Positions 22,310 to 40,695 of a stretch of 64,000 nucleotides of DNA are shown piece after piece; positions within the stretch are counted from its first letter, which is position 1; each line of letters opens with the position of its first letter. The position numbers and the translations under genes were made by a program. Origin of the DNA: Ylistrum balloti (taxonomy: Eukaryota); the NCBI RefSeq assembly GCF_031769215.1, contig NW_026781982.1:1054001-1118000 (forward strand), written 5' to 3'. The notes beneath the pieces are model-generated. The model saw nothing but the letters and a program-made list of their open reading frames with translations. It made no database searches and was not told the origin of the DNA.

Positions 22310-25300
22310 CTACGCCACCGGGTCATGAAACTGGATATTACCATCTTCGTAGTAATTATCTATGCAATCATGATTGTCTTTCATCGGACACTTTGAAAAT
22401 TTATGAACTTTTTTAATCCCTCCTTCCTTTACGTGCTGTTGATGAAAGAAAATTTCCGGATACATATTACGTGCAAATAGACCAGGATTTCTCATCCCAT
22501 TCAGAAGACGTCCATTGAAGGGAATCTTGGTCAAATTGCGATGTTCCGCTCTTACTTCATAAGGTTCGATCCAGTCACGTGACCAGATGTCTGCGTGCCA
22601 GTGTTTACTCCTTGCGCCTAGTTGTGCTGGATGTGCAGATGGCGAACAAACACTTCTCCTTTCTACTCTAACTGTTATACCTTTAGACATGAGTTTTAAT
22701 CCACCATTTTGTAATTTATTGAAATCTTGACAACGGAAGTTGAGATCCGCGTCAATCTCCCAAGGGATTACATCATACATTTTCACTGCTCCTAATATTG
22801 TTCCCGCGTTCAATTGACACGATCCTCCTTCTTTTTCACACATATCCATAAAACCATAACTTAAATCAGCAAGCTCTTGTATACAGCATGGTGATCTAAC
22901 AAATCCTTTCTTTCTCTGACAAGGATACTCGTAGTCACATCCAAAGTTTAAAGTCAGTCCAAAAGAAAACTTCAATCTATACAGATTTCTCTTTCTTCCA
23001 AAACTTTCCCATTCTTTTGTTACTTTACTTCGGCGCGGAAAATCCATATCAAATAACGAATCGGCACAAACAGCTGACTCAGTATTGAGTCTCATGAAAA
23101 AGTCTTCGTATAATCCCATAGGAGATAATTTACTATCGAATTTTATCTCGTTTAGTGTTTTTGTTTTGATGAGGAACGGTCCGTCCATGTGATCACAAAA
23201 TGCACAGTCATGCAAGGATTCATCATATCCTTCCTCGTACACAACAGTGTAGTTTCGGTACACCCTCTGATGGCATCCTAAACTCCAAATATTATCCGAG
23301 TTTCTAATAGATCCGCCTACTGCATTAACATTCAATATCTCAATTTCTCGCACAAGTCGCTCAATTCTTGCATTCCAATCCAGTTCCGTTACGTTTCTTA
23401 AAACTAAAGTGTATGTCGTTTTCACGTTTTCCATCAACATGTTTAATGCCTCACCCTCTGTAATAGTAGATGTCATTTTCTTTACCACAATATTACTTTT
23501 CTCTTTTATATTTCCACTATAGTCACCAATTATGACCGGAATTTTTGATCCATACCCATCCCTGGTGAACTCCTTATCTGCAGGCAAATCATAGTTTAGA
23601 CGAATGATCGTGACAATCTCCTCCAAACGTTTAGAGTAGGAACAATTTTTGATCAGATGACCATATACTTTATCAACATAATACTCCGGACACATGCTGC
23701 TTGATTTGTATAGTTTTCGTCGTGTGACAGCTTCGAACGAAGTACCGAATCCTCTCAGTATTGCATCCATATTTTCACTTGCATACTTCAGTGCTCGTTG
23801 TGTTTTGGAACCCCTCGCGTGTAACCTTGCCTTTTTTAAATAAATAGCCAAGTCAAATATTTGCCGTCGAATATTTGTAACATTTGCGACATTCGCTTTA
23901 ATTGACGAAATATCGATTGTCTCCTGCTTTTCCAAGCTTTTAGCGAGCTGCTGAGTCAGAGTTAAGTTTAGCTCGTAGGGGTTTCGGTATTGAAAGAAGA
24001 AAGGAAGCGCAATCATACCCCCAATGCCGAAACATATTAGGATGTAAAGGCTTTTCTGCAAAAATATAATAAAACAGGACAATCAGTCGTAATAATGAAA
24101 AGGCGTTTTTGTTTACAAATTATATAAGTTTCTGATTTTTTATCAAACAACAGTACGGTAGGATCTGTGATAGTATTTACTATAACTGGTCCGTTTCTCA
24201 GTTTCCTAAGCAACATAACCATGACAGTACAGCCTGGTTTGTGCTCGGCGTCCCGAGAAACACAATCGCGACAACATAGACTGGTTTGTGCTCGGCGTCC
24301 CGAGAAACACAATCACGACAACATAGACTGGTTTGTGCTCGGCGTCCCGAGAAACACAATCACCACATCACAGAATGGTACATCTTTCAGCTTCCTGAGC
24401 AAAACAACCACGGAAACACAGATGGGTCCGTTTCTCAGCTTCCTGAGAAACCCCATCACGGCAGCACATACTTGTTCATCTCAAAGCTTCCTTAGCAACA
24501 CAACCACAAAAACACAGACTGGTCCATCTTACATCTTCATGACAAACACAACCACGACAACACAGACTGGTCCAACCAAGATCTTCTTGACAAACACAAC
24601 AACGACAACACAGACTGGTGCATCTCACAGCTTCTTTAGTAACACAACCACGACAACATAGACTAGTCGATCCCACCGTTTCTTGAGAAACATACCCACG
24701 ACAGCACAGACTGGTCTAACCAAGATCTTCTTGACAAACATAACAACGACAACACAGACTGGTGCATCTCACAGCTTCTTTAGTAACACAATCACGACAA
24801 CATAGACTAGTCGATCCCACAGTTTCTTGAGAAACATAACCATGACAACACAGACTGGTCCATCCTACAGCTTCTTGATCAACACAACAACGACAACATA
24901 GACTGGACTCTATCACAGCTACTTGTGCAGCACAACCACGACAACACAGACTGGTCCAACCTAGAGCTTCTTGAGCAACATCACCAATACAACATAGACT
25001 GGTCCCTATCACAGCTACTTGTGCAACACAATCACGACAACACAGACTGATCCAACCAAGAGCTTCTTGATAAACATAACCACGACAACATAGACTAGTC
25101 AATCCCATAGTTTCTTGAGAAACATAACCACGACAACACTGACTGGTTCATTTCTCAACTTCGACTTCGATGACACTCAAATAGCTACAATTAAAATATG
25201 ATAATGTATATTTCGGCAAGTGCACATTATACAATGCCCGTGTGGTCAGATCATCTAATTCAGACACGATATATTGAGATCAACTGTTGTATATACGCTA

Positions 25301-29988: not shown

Positions 29989-32900
29989 TGTTGCATAAGT
30001 GCCCACTTACAATGGTTATGCAAAGTTAAAATTAGCAAGAAATATGTCGTCTGCCAATTCAGCTTGTTTTTCTTTACTTCATTATTTTTTCTTATACAAA
30101 AAATGAGGCTCTAAAAACCATCACTTGCACGCTTGCATTCTAATCACTCACACGCTTTACCGTTATCACACAACACCCTCCCCCTTATAAAAAGGTCACT
30201 TGTTGGTACGGAGTTCACAGGCTTTGCAACAGTACAGTTCTAGCTGTTCTGCATCACTTGAGGTCAAGCCTACACAATATCCATGGAACCACACAAAGCA
30301 AAAATCACATTGAATGATCATTATTCCATCATCGGGTTTCTGGCACACACATTGGGTTTCCAAATTTTGGACGTCGCGATTTTCCTGTTGGTCTTTAAAT
30401 CCACTGAGGTAGATTACGGTCGGTGCATAATTTCAATCGCATGGTTCACAGCTTTCTCTGATCTACCAATATGCACTTCATACACATGCGGCGTGTAGCA
30501 CTTCATGATGACTCCAGGACCTTTCCATACTGACTTCAATTTGGGATTTTGACGAGACGGCGTTGCAGTGTCAAATATGAAGACAACATCCCCAACTTTA
30601 TACCGGGTTTCATGTTCGCGGACATCGTAATCCCTTTTCATTCGTTTCTGTGACGTTTTTAAGGTTCTCCTTGCCACATCATTTGCACTTTGAATGACAT
30701 CGATGAGCTTTTCCACATATGTATCCACATCCTGTGCCTTTTCTCCTGGTGGATTGCGGTATAAGATATCTGCTGGCTGGTTGGTCTCACGCCCAAGCAT
30801 TAACTGATTGGCTGTATATAATGTTTGTCGGTTGACCGAACACCTTAATACACCCGCTTTCTGTGGTAAGTGAATATACCACTCTTTTTGCGACTTTATA
30901 AAGCACCGGATAGCATTCATAATCGTGCGATTGAATCGCTCGACCTGTCCATTGGCAGAGGGTTTTATGGATCTGCATCACTTCACATAAAGCCTTGAAC
31001 AACCGGCTCTCGAAATGCCGGCCTTAGTCAGTATGAATTTGGAATGGATATCCAAATCTTGCAAAACATTCATTGACGGCGGCCCTTGCTGTTGTCTCAG
31101 TTGTTTGTGTTGGTAACGGGACACACTCTGCCCATCCAGTAAACTGATCTACCATAACTAGAATATGTTCGTTTCCCATAGCTGTACATGGAAGTGGCCC
31201 CATAAAGTCCAGATGGACTCTCTCCATTGGCTCCCCTGACTGAAACAAGCTCATGGCGCAACGATCTTTCCGACTGGGTTTCTTGTTGGTATTACGGACC
31301 ATGCATGACTTGACAAACTTCTGAACATCTCGGGGCAAGCAATACCAATGGAACCATTGGCGTACCATACTTTCGGTGCGATTTATGCACTGATGTGCAC
31401 TAGCTGGGATATCATGACAATGAAAGATGGCATCGTCCCTCATGCTCTGAGGTACTATTAGATATTCCGACTCATCAGTGTCTTCAGGACTCCTCCTCAA
31501 TAACACACCTTGTTCATCCAGATGATATAACTCTCTGTTTATCCAGTAGTATTTCGTTGCTCTATCAGACCCAAATACCTCTCATTTATCTGCTTCTTTT
31601 CCGCTTTTTAGCCATTCCCGAAGAAAAGATAACTCTGGATCCTTATCTTGTTCTACCTGTATCTCTTTAGCAGTATCTTTACAGTTGAATGTCTACAGCA
31701 TTCACATCCGGTCCATCTTCAGATGTCAAGATTTTGAATCCATACGACGATACTTCTACAGTTGTTCACCTGACAAGTTGACCTTGCCCCAGCAGATAGT
31801 GGCGAAACTGTCTAGTGAATCGAACCACCGCTAAGAGTTCTTTACGCGTGGTACAGTACCTGCGTTGTTCTGGTGTCAAAGCGTAACTTGCATAGGCGTT
31901 CTTTCCTCGCCATCCTGTACATGGCACAATTCACTGCCAATTGCAAAATCTGATGCATCGGTGTCAAGTTTTGAACATGTCATGATGATTTAGTATGGTC
32001 AATGCAGGAGGTGAGCTCAGTGAGGGTTGTAACTTGTCAAATGCTATTTGATGTTTTTCATTCCACCTGAAGTCATTTTTTCCAGTCAACCCATGAAGGG
32101 GAGCAGCAATTTTGGCGTTCCCGGAAATGAATGAACGGTGGTAATTGGCAAAGCCAAGAAACTGCTCTACCTCTATATGTTGTAGGAGTTGGCCATTCTT
32201 TCATTCTCTCCACATGTTTGTCACTGGGTTCAATGCCATCTTCATTTAGAGTTCGTCCTAAGAACTTCACCTTTAAGCCTCGAAGAACAAGATTCATAAC
32301 CGTGGCATAGGTCGCATGAGCGTTGCAAAGACCAAAGCCCATTTTGACGAACTGAAACAATCCATGTTTTGCGGTCTTTGGTTTGTCCTCCTTTTTGATT
32401 GGGACTTGCAAATAGGCCGAATTTGCATCGAGCTTGGAGAACCAGATGTTATCTGTAAGTGCATCAAGGCATTCTTCTGTCAAGGGTAGTGGAAAAACGT
32501 CCTTCGTTGTTACAGAATTGAGACCCCGATAGTCTATGCACTAGCGCACTCAACCATCGCGTTTACGTATCAATACTGGCGCTGATGCCCATTCTGACGT
32601 AGAGGAATCAATGACCCCAGCGGTTTTCTCAATTGAGATTCCTCCTCATTAGAAAAGCATTCTGAAGTTTCACGAAATCGTTGCTTCATTGGTTTTGCCA
32701 TCCCTGTGTCAATATTTTGCTCAATGGCACTGAAATGATCCAAATCAAAGTCATTTTTCGCAAAAACATCCGAATAGTCGTGTGTGAGTGTCGGAAATTT
32801 GCTTAACTCGTCAGCAGATAGCTGTCCTTGGGCGTCATTAATCACACATTGCAGATTGAATTGGGCTTTATCTGTCCTGATCACAGAGCAAGGTGTCCAC

Positions 32901-39781: not shown

Positions 39782-39859
39782 ATCTGTTAAAGAGTATCAT
39801 TTGTGACTTTCAAGAGCACATTATATATATTGGCTGGCAGCCAGCAATAACCTTTAGTG

Positions 39860-40572
39860 TGTTATGTATAAATATTGTGTATTAATCTAAATCCAGATGT
39901 GCTGTGTTTACATGTATTGTATCATATTGAGTGTTTACATAAAAACCTGTTTATAATTATTTGGCGCAATTTGTATAGAAAGTCCTAGGCAGATTTTTCT
40001 AGAAAGTTCGGTTGCTAGAGTGACCTGTTTGTTTCCGGGAGTTTCGAAATCTAGTAAGTTCGGTTATTAGAATTACCTGGGCGTTTCCGGAAGTTTCTAG
40101 ATATAAATGTAAATAAGCTAGGTACCTGAAAGTCTAGAATCATCTAGATAAGAACTTTCTAGAAATATTTAGTGTATATAAACATGATGGGACTGAGTCT
40201 GAGCAGCCTTTTTTAAGTATTAACGCCTTGAGTGAGATTGCTTTGAGACTTCAGTCTGTGAAGTGTGGACTTTTACAGTAATTCAGTGATAATGCCTTGC
40301 GGACTTGCACTTATACATACCCAACGAGGAAACAATTCTTGGATAAGTCTTCGGATACCCTGTTTTCGGGACAATCTTTTGTGAATTCTGCTGGATTTGG
40401 AGAACTTCCATCGCAAGATAAGTTCTGACTTTTGATTAATTAGTGGCTAGCTCTGTGCACCATCGCAATATTTGTAACTTTACTGTAGAATTTATTTTTT
40501 GTTATTAAAGTGTTGAATTGTAAACCTAGCTGTTGGGTTTCATTTGCTGTACGTTAATTCCGTAACGTAACA
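39860..40572 (+). mobile_element. Solo LTR (713 bp) with 4-bp TSD
   Basis: Termini TGTTATG...CGTAACA; AGTG at 39856-39859 and 40573-40576; TATATAAA at 40175; ATTAAA at ~40504. Confidence 0.85.
39996..40182 (+). promoter_or_regulatory. Cluster of three perfect heat-shock elements plus TATA box inside the solo LTR
   Basis: tTTCt-aGAAa-gTTCg (39996-40010); tTTCc-gGAAg-tTTCt-aGATa (40084-40103); aGAAc-tTTCt-aGAAa (40151-40165); TATATAAA at 40175-40182. Function is inferred from the HSF consensus. Confidence 0.7.
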
Positions 40573-40695
40573 AGTGTAATACAAAAAAATTATGGTCCTA
40601 CTAACAGAACACACATAAAACAAGAATAGATTTGTTCTATCCTTCCATCTAACATTCCCTACCTACACCTGGAACTGCTATATGGCCATCTAATT

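Follow-up and report, generated by a model that had tools for sequence, protein, structure and literature searches.

The U3 region of a Gmr1-like Ty3/gypsy retrotransposon family of the scallop Ylistrum balloti appears to be built as a heat-shock promoter, and binding of heat-shock factor (HSF) with heat-driven transcription of the element is most likely how this region worked when the family was active (we assign this reading a probability of roughly 0.7). In the proposed mechanism, trimeric HSF would bind the heat-shock elements (HSEs) of the long terminal repeat (LTR) after heat or proteotoxic stress. Two of the HSEs would act from within a tandemly duplicated 52-bp enhancer unit, and the third from a position 10 nt upstream of the TATA box. 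In the manner of ONSEN and of LTR families of Macrostomum, HSF would drive synthesis of the element's genomic RNA from a start ~30 nt beyond the TATA box, and an ATTAAA motif would probably end many transcripts inside the LTR. We regard the scallop heat-shock LTR as a well-supported reading of the sequence of an old, apparently dead family. The copy from which the analysis proceeds lies in the window (the whole 64-kb stretch of Y. balloti DNA that was analysed), and its features are listed in Table 1.

Table 1. Features of the window copy of the LTR and of its surroundings (positions in the window; LTR positions in brackets).
Feature	Position	Strand	Remarks
Left target-site duplication AGTG	39856-39859	.	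Matches 40573-40576
Solo LTR	39860-40572	+	713 bp, TGT..ACA ends; Gmr1-like Ty3/gypsy family of Ylistrum balloti
U3, R and U5 regions	U3 ~39860-40205, R ~40205-40530, U5 up to 40572	+	Inner LTR borders inferred
Site X, perfect HSE specific to the window copy	39997-40009	.	Disrupted by 1-3 core mismatches or by an indel in each of the other 27 copies
Two tandem 52-bp units, each with an HSE site at its end	39998-40101	+	Units 39998-40049 and 40050-40101; 79% alike
Site A, ancestral HSE	40033-40045 (LTR 174-186)	.	One core mismatch here (GGA for GAA); perfect in 20/27 other copies
Site B, perfect HSE and near-match fourth unit	40085-40097 (LTR 226-238)	.	Perfect in 20/27 other copies
Site C, proximal perfect HSE	40152-40164 (LTR 293-305)	.	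Perfect in 22/27 other copies
TATA box TATATAAA	40175-40182 (LTR 316-323)	+	Intact in 21/27 other copies
Predicted transcription start	40205-40215	+	Inferred from TATA spacing alone, 25-35 nt past the TATA box
ATTAAA, likely LTR polyadenylation signal	40504-40509	+	Kept in 24/28 copies; among the best conserved stretches
Right target-site duplication AGTG	40573-40576	.	Matches 39856-39859
643-aa ORF with reverse-transcriptase domain	41276-43207	-	Pfam RVT_1, E 1e-33; other, non-LTR-like element

The solo LTR and its family

The segment from 39860 to 40572 is a solo LTR, the remnant of a retrotransposon whose two LTRs recombined with each other. This identification, already made in the first-pass annotation, is borne out by the following observations: (i) end-to-end copies exist in the Y. 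balloti genome, of which at least 40 were scored at 81-91% identity, most of them spanning bases 1-713; (ii) the segment is flanked by a 4-bp target-site duplication (TSD), and many other copies have 4-bp duplications of their own (e.g., CTGT, ATAT, ACTT, GTGT and CTCT); (iii) a primer site is absent from both flanks, which consist of the TSD and unrelated sequence; and (iv) the window diverges from contigs of an independent DNA-like sequencing run exactly at 39860 and 40572/3.

A further 19 LTR copies, truncated or more divergent, were recovered by means of a word of 17 bases that includes site B. This word has 35 hits in the genome (vs. 0 for the reversed control), all of them within the LTR family, whose genomic copy number is at least 60. 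Among the 30 best copies, all searched for an adjoining primer site, the site was missing beside 29 (L031 being the sole exception), and nearly all of these top copies are therefore solo or 3' LTRs. Two copies, L010 (G000:C52) and L013 (G000:C278), are preceded by a AAGGAGGGG polypurine tract and have no TSD, which identifies them as 3' LTRs of truncated elements and not as solo LTRs; the same tract is present in L077, a relative of the family from a Tara metagenome. Copies L009 and L012 (G000:C776), and likewise L017, L018 and L022 (G000:C892 and C1143), have the same flanks and TSDs at different places. Both groups are segmental duplications or redundant haplotigs of the assembly, and each was entered once in the counts.

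Three collinear internal copies (L031, L033 and L034) show paired LTRs around an internal region of ~4.8 kb. An 18-nt primer site starts 3 nt past the 5' LTR, its complement being the 3' end of tRNA-Pro(AGG) genes of the host, and purine-rich tracts precede the 3' LTRs of the internal copies. The domains found comprise RVT_1, RT_RNaseH, RT_RNaseH_2, Integrase_H2C2, Integrase_p58_C and SH3_Tf2-1; in L031 and L034 they are arranged in the order weak zinc knuckle, integrase (H2C2 and C-terminal SH3), RVT_1 and RNase H, the last lying right against the 3' LTR. A set of gypsy-type domains in which the integrase comes before the reverse transcriptase (RT) constitutes the Gmr1 arrangement (PMC6238403), and the Gmr1 clade, with its gypsy-type RT and RNase H and an integrase upstream of the RT (Goodwin and Poulter, 2002; PMC6238403), corresponds in this respect to the scallop family. 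By domain order alone, the family is classed as Gmr1-like Ty3/gypsy.

Within individual elements, the paired LTRs show 94.2 and 91.5% identity, the median identity of the LTR copies is 89% (maximum 94.7%), and the internal copies, of which there are about 6 in the genome, show 80-91% identity. Moreover, the internal parts of L031 and L034 are broken by many stop codons. The diverged LTR pairs, the copy identity of ~89% and the internal stops make present-day activity unlikely, and the family appears to be old, decayed and extinct in this genome. The suggestion in the first-pass annotation that this would be a heat-activated retrotransposon consequently has to be moved into the past: the family would have been one when it was active.

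Two further ORFs of the window were assigned, namely a 590-aa ORF with a LicD-family domain (22310-24082, minus strand), which fits the FKRP-like gene reported in the earlier annotation, and a 286-aa ORF (49748-50608, plus strand), which is a piece of gypsy-type RNase H from a different retroelement.

Heat-shock elements and TATA box across the family

Pattern searches of the window copy detected three perfect nGAAnnTTCnnGAAn arrays (sites X, B and C), situated 10-180 nt upstream of the TATA box; the latter begins 10 nt downstream of the last HSE. The searches agree in this with the three perfect HSEs described earlier upstream of a TATA box, and the internal duplication of ~51 bp that had been said to carry HSEs was recovered as two tandem 52-bp units. 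Shuffled sequences predict about 1 perfect HSE per 64-kb window, and the background in 137 kb of non-LTR DNA (the window plus the flanks of other copies) amounts to 2 perfect HSEs; three of them within 170 bp are therefore far beyond chance. The enrichment over background is roughly 200-fold. One other perfect three-unit HSE is located in the whole 64-kb window, at 32664-32676.

Conservation of these sites was analysed in an alignment of 28 non-redundant LTR copies (the window copy and 27 others), chosen by overall LTR similarity. At least one perfect HSE is present in all 28 copies, and at least two together with TATATAAA in 19 of them. Conservation of the HSEs across the LTRs of the family, proposed in the first-pass annotation as a check, was thus found for sites A, B and C, with the frequencies given in Table 1. 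The window copy is atypical in that site A was lost and site X gained, the latter having no perfect counterpart in the other 27 copies of the alignment. The HSE cluster therefore holds as a feature of the family, but the trio of the window copy (X, B and C) differs from the ancestral one (A, B and C). As judged from the alignment, the three HSEs of this latter set and the TATA box are ancestral to the family. Both 52-bp units also occur across the family, so the duplication is older than its spread. Copy L028 (G000:C488:552752-556491) has three tandem 52-bp HSE-bearing units instead of two, which indicates that family members differed in how many enhancer units they carried.

The minor-allele fraction is 2.5% in the HSE and TATA core columns, compared with 5.5% over the remaining columns between LTR positions 141 and 400. 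Variants present in two or more copies reflect differences between propagating lineages; those common to at least two copies account for 0.8% in the core and 2.8% in the rest (Fisher p = 6e-5), whereas the corresponding values for singleton variants are 1.6 and 2.7% (p = 0.06). A base-matched column permutation of the core columns yielded p = 2e-4, and site C proved the most conserved (rank 1 of 248 masked windows). These values show HSE blocks that were constrained while the family was spreading. The contrast between core and spacer columns, considered as decisive proof of an nGAAn grammar, was rejected, since it is gone once the CpG columns are removed: non-CpG spacer columns vary at 3.1% vs. 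2.4% in the core columns, and CpG decay (10.7%) makes up the spacer excess. With spacers as conserved as cores, the constraint applies to whole HSE blocks and does not prove the nGAAn grammar.

The host HSP70 promoter and related elements

A gene with an HSF DNA-binding domain is present in the Y. balloti genome, as is a tandem array of at least 9 intronless HSP70 B2-like genes (646 aa; XP_0600687xx), placed 5-7 kb apart at G000:C235:616000-668500 (loci L037-L045). The promoters of these genes are near-identical. Relative to the ATG, their single perfect HSE is placed at -277 and TATATAA at -196, in the order distal perfect HSE, degenerate proximal HSE block and TATA box. LTR positions 226-331 align collinearly with this HSP70 B2-like promoter with a score of 68; dinucleotide shuffles give 27 +/- 5, and a second HSP70 promoter, which also has perfect HSEs and a TATA box, gives 37. 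Scores of 53-74 on the HSP70 B2-like promoter were obtained for all family copies, vs. a median of 32 for control flanks. The host HSE differs from LTR sites A and B in a single spacer base. A 13-base TATA context is identical between the LTR and the promoter of the host cluster; taken alone, it was not accepted as evidence that the promoter had been captured, since the 13-mer occurs often in the genome (390 hits vs. 262 for the reversed control).

The hsp70 promoter layout ascribed to the LTR in the first-pass annotation is thus upheld by the collinear alignment of its HSE array and TATA box with a promoter of the host itself. Order and spacing are similar, but the host promoter has one perfect HSE vs. 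three in the LTR family, and the likeness is confined to a module of ~105 bp. The LTR promoter thus resembles one particular host heat-shock promoter beyond generic motif content, whether through capture or through convergence, and this likeness makes a case for promoter mimicry or capture.

Relatives of the RT-RNase H piece in other genomes reach up to 69% amino-acid identity, and two of the elements identified carry perfect HSEs in their LTRs. The first, L070 (ENA ERZ25069865; 3265-10132), is bordered by an identical pair of 755-bp LTRs, each with two perfect HSEs, the proximal of which lies 8 nt before the TATA box; a tRNA-Pro-like primer site follows the LTR. The second, L075 (ENA ERZ26273219; 2540-8826), has 498-bp LTRs (98.4% alike) in which a first HSE is followed by a perfect array of four units, located 8 nt upstream of TATAAAA; past the LTR comes a tRNA-Pro primer site that is likewise perfect. 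The L075 LTR starts with the first eight bases of the scallop LTR (TGTTATGT) and ends with its last seven (CGTAACA). The LTRs of L070 and L075 gave no BLAST alignment to the scallop LTR, and the assemblies containing them gave no DNA match to the scallop genome. Both elements fall in large protein clusters of up to 610 member sequences, and these clusters, together with the near-identical LTR pairs, suggest that L070 and L075 were recently active at high copy in their genomes.

Perfect HSEs were missing from the LTR-like repeats of L072 (Sinanodonta), L073 (Patella), L074 (Apostichopus) and L076, and no clear LTRs were found in L071, a short NCBI contig. The sequence of the closest relative, L077 (on a Tara metagenome scaffold), breaks off after ~100 bp of the 3' LTR. 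According to the gene calls, the integrase precedes the RT and RNase H in L070, L074, L075 and L076, which backs the Gmr1-like order, and in L070, L075 and L076 a SCAN-type gag call stands ahead of the integrase.

A wider interpretation, which we consider doubtful, is that these elements represent a marine-invertebrate, Gmr1-like sublineage with a long-lived, hsp70-like HSE-TATA promoter. In the scallop, the promoter module would have been captured from, or have co-descended with, the promoter of the host HSP70 cluster, and the LTR copies would form a reservoir of HSF sites shaping the heat-shock response of the scallop. Elements of this putative sublineage have in common the tRNA-Pro primer site and the TGTTAyGT..ACGTAACA ends. 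In a poorly resolved tree of the short RT-RNase H fragment, built from database relatives only, the HSE-bearing lineages were not united.

Alternative readings and known systems

The conserved blocks of the LTR may bind another factor, such as an ETS-family protein recognizing CCGGAAGT or a reader of the TCTAGA palindromes; the HSE match would then be incidental, and the LTR promoter constitutive or tissue-specific. Sites A and B do contain CCGGAAGT, an ETS-type core, TCTAGA palindromes recur across LTR positions 138-305, and the non-CpG spacers are conserved like the HSE cores, so that the nGAAn grammar is not singled out. We nevertheless consider binding of such a factor unlikely: a GGAA core is missing from sites C and X, although no block is better conserved than site C; the HSE pattern is retained in several copies that have lost GGAA (e.g., CAGAA, CTGAA or CCGAA); L070 and L075 have the HSE pattern and TATA spacing in common, but the ETS core inconsistently; and nearly the same element is present in the inducible-type HSP70 promoter of the host.

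With its TATA box and three perfect HSEs retained, the window copy may still be a cryptic heat-inducible promoter or enhancer today. Its predicted transcription runs on the plus strand; the RT ORF, which is encoded on the opposite strand, ends 704 bp downstream of the LTR. Of the earlier proposal that the LTR would be transcribed antisense into this ORF, the orientation stands, but the reach is questionable, as the ATTAAA motif may end transcripts before the RT ORF. Another possibility is that the host has co-opted the window copy or other copies as heat-responsive enhancers or alternative promoters of nearby genes, in which case they would now serve host regulation instead of transposon expression. 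A precedent is provided by Helitron1_CE and related Caenorhabditis Helitrons, which are reported to spread HSEs, with nearby host genes becoming HSF-1 dependent (Garrigues et al., eLife 2019, PMC6927752). Consistent with such a takeover, the window copy has not only retained its HSEs and TATA box but also gained a new perfect site, and at least 60 copies have scattered HSEs through the genome. It is nonetheless quite unlikely, given that singleton (post-insertion) changes of the core are not significantly depleted, as expected under neutral decay, and that no gene start lies within ~700 bp downstream of the window copy, where the nearest feature is the opposite-strand RT ORF of another transposon.

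Very improbable, finally, is the notion that the motifs are relics devoid of regulatory meaning, a by-product of the 52-bp duplication and of an A/T-rich, palindrome-rich LTR inherited neutrally: a single duplication did give rise to two of the sites, and most copies are neutrally decaying solo LTRs whose shared motifs indicate common descent only, but the core columns are half as variable as base-matched ones, variants common to several copies are 3.5-fold depleted, the HSE-to-TATA layout recurs in non-alignable LTRs of two other genomes, and HSEs are roughly 200-fold enriched over background.

The preferred reading, an LTR promoter driven by HSF when the family was active, has counterparts elsewhere, since HSE-driven LTR retrotransposons are already established in a plant and a flatworm. 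In Arabidopsis and other Brassicaceae, the LTR of ONSEN (ATCOPIA78) contains HSEs that recruit heat-shock factor, and transcription of the element is activated by heat; for this plant Ty1/copia retrotransposon, direct binding of HsfA2 has been shown and transposition has been observed. The scallop LTR would follow the same logic of hijacking the heat-shock response, but the two are unrelated in phylogeny and sequence, and their likeness is therefore convergent.

In the searchable open literature, no HSE-driven LTR retrotransposon of a mollusc, bivalve or scallop was found, and a paper on the Mytilus Hsp90 promoter yielded unrelated repeats only. The claim that no equivalent had been described accordingly stands for molluscs, but not for animals in general: in Macrostomum lignano, a flatworm, LTR families of the Mag, CsRN1 and Gmr1/Osvaldo groups contain canonical HSEs and show >250-fold heat induction (Ustyantsev et al., Mobile DNA, December 2025, PMC12801592). 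Mutation of the HSEs abolished the heat response of a Mag-family LTR promoter, and 2 of the 6 HSE-bearing M. lignano families were not heat-induced (PMC12801592), so HSEs alone are no guarantee of a response.

The Caenorhabditis Helitrons resemble the scallop LTR family in spreading HSEs through an animal genome, but they are rolling-circle DNA transposons and do not act through an LTR promoter. Scallops and other bivalves are exposed to marine heatwaves, and by scattering HSF sites, a transposon family could place additional heat-responsive promoters or enhancers in the vicinity of host genes. If heat induction of the scallop family is true, HSE-driven LTR retrotransposons would extend to molluscs as a third case after plants and flatworms, and the strategy would recur inside one retrotransposon clade in several marine animals. 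A close parallel is offered by the M. lignano families, which, like that of the scallop, are spiralian Ty3/gypsy elements of a marine host whose LTRs contain 1-4 canonical nGAAnnTTCnnGAAn arrays upstream of a TATA box; one M. lignano family belongs to the Gmr1/Osvaldo clade and has the same pol arrangement as the scallop family. The scallop family differs from them in its mollusc host, in a heat response that is predicted from sequence, in its age and preservation mostly as solo LTRs, and in a tandem duplication of 52 bp that carries two of the HSEs.
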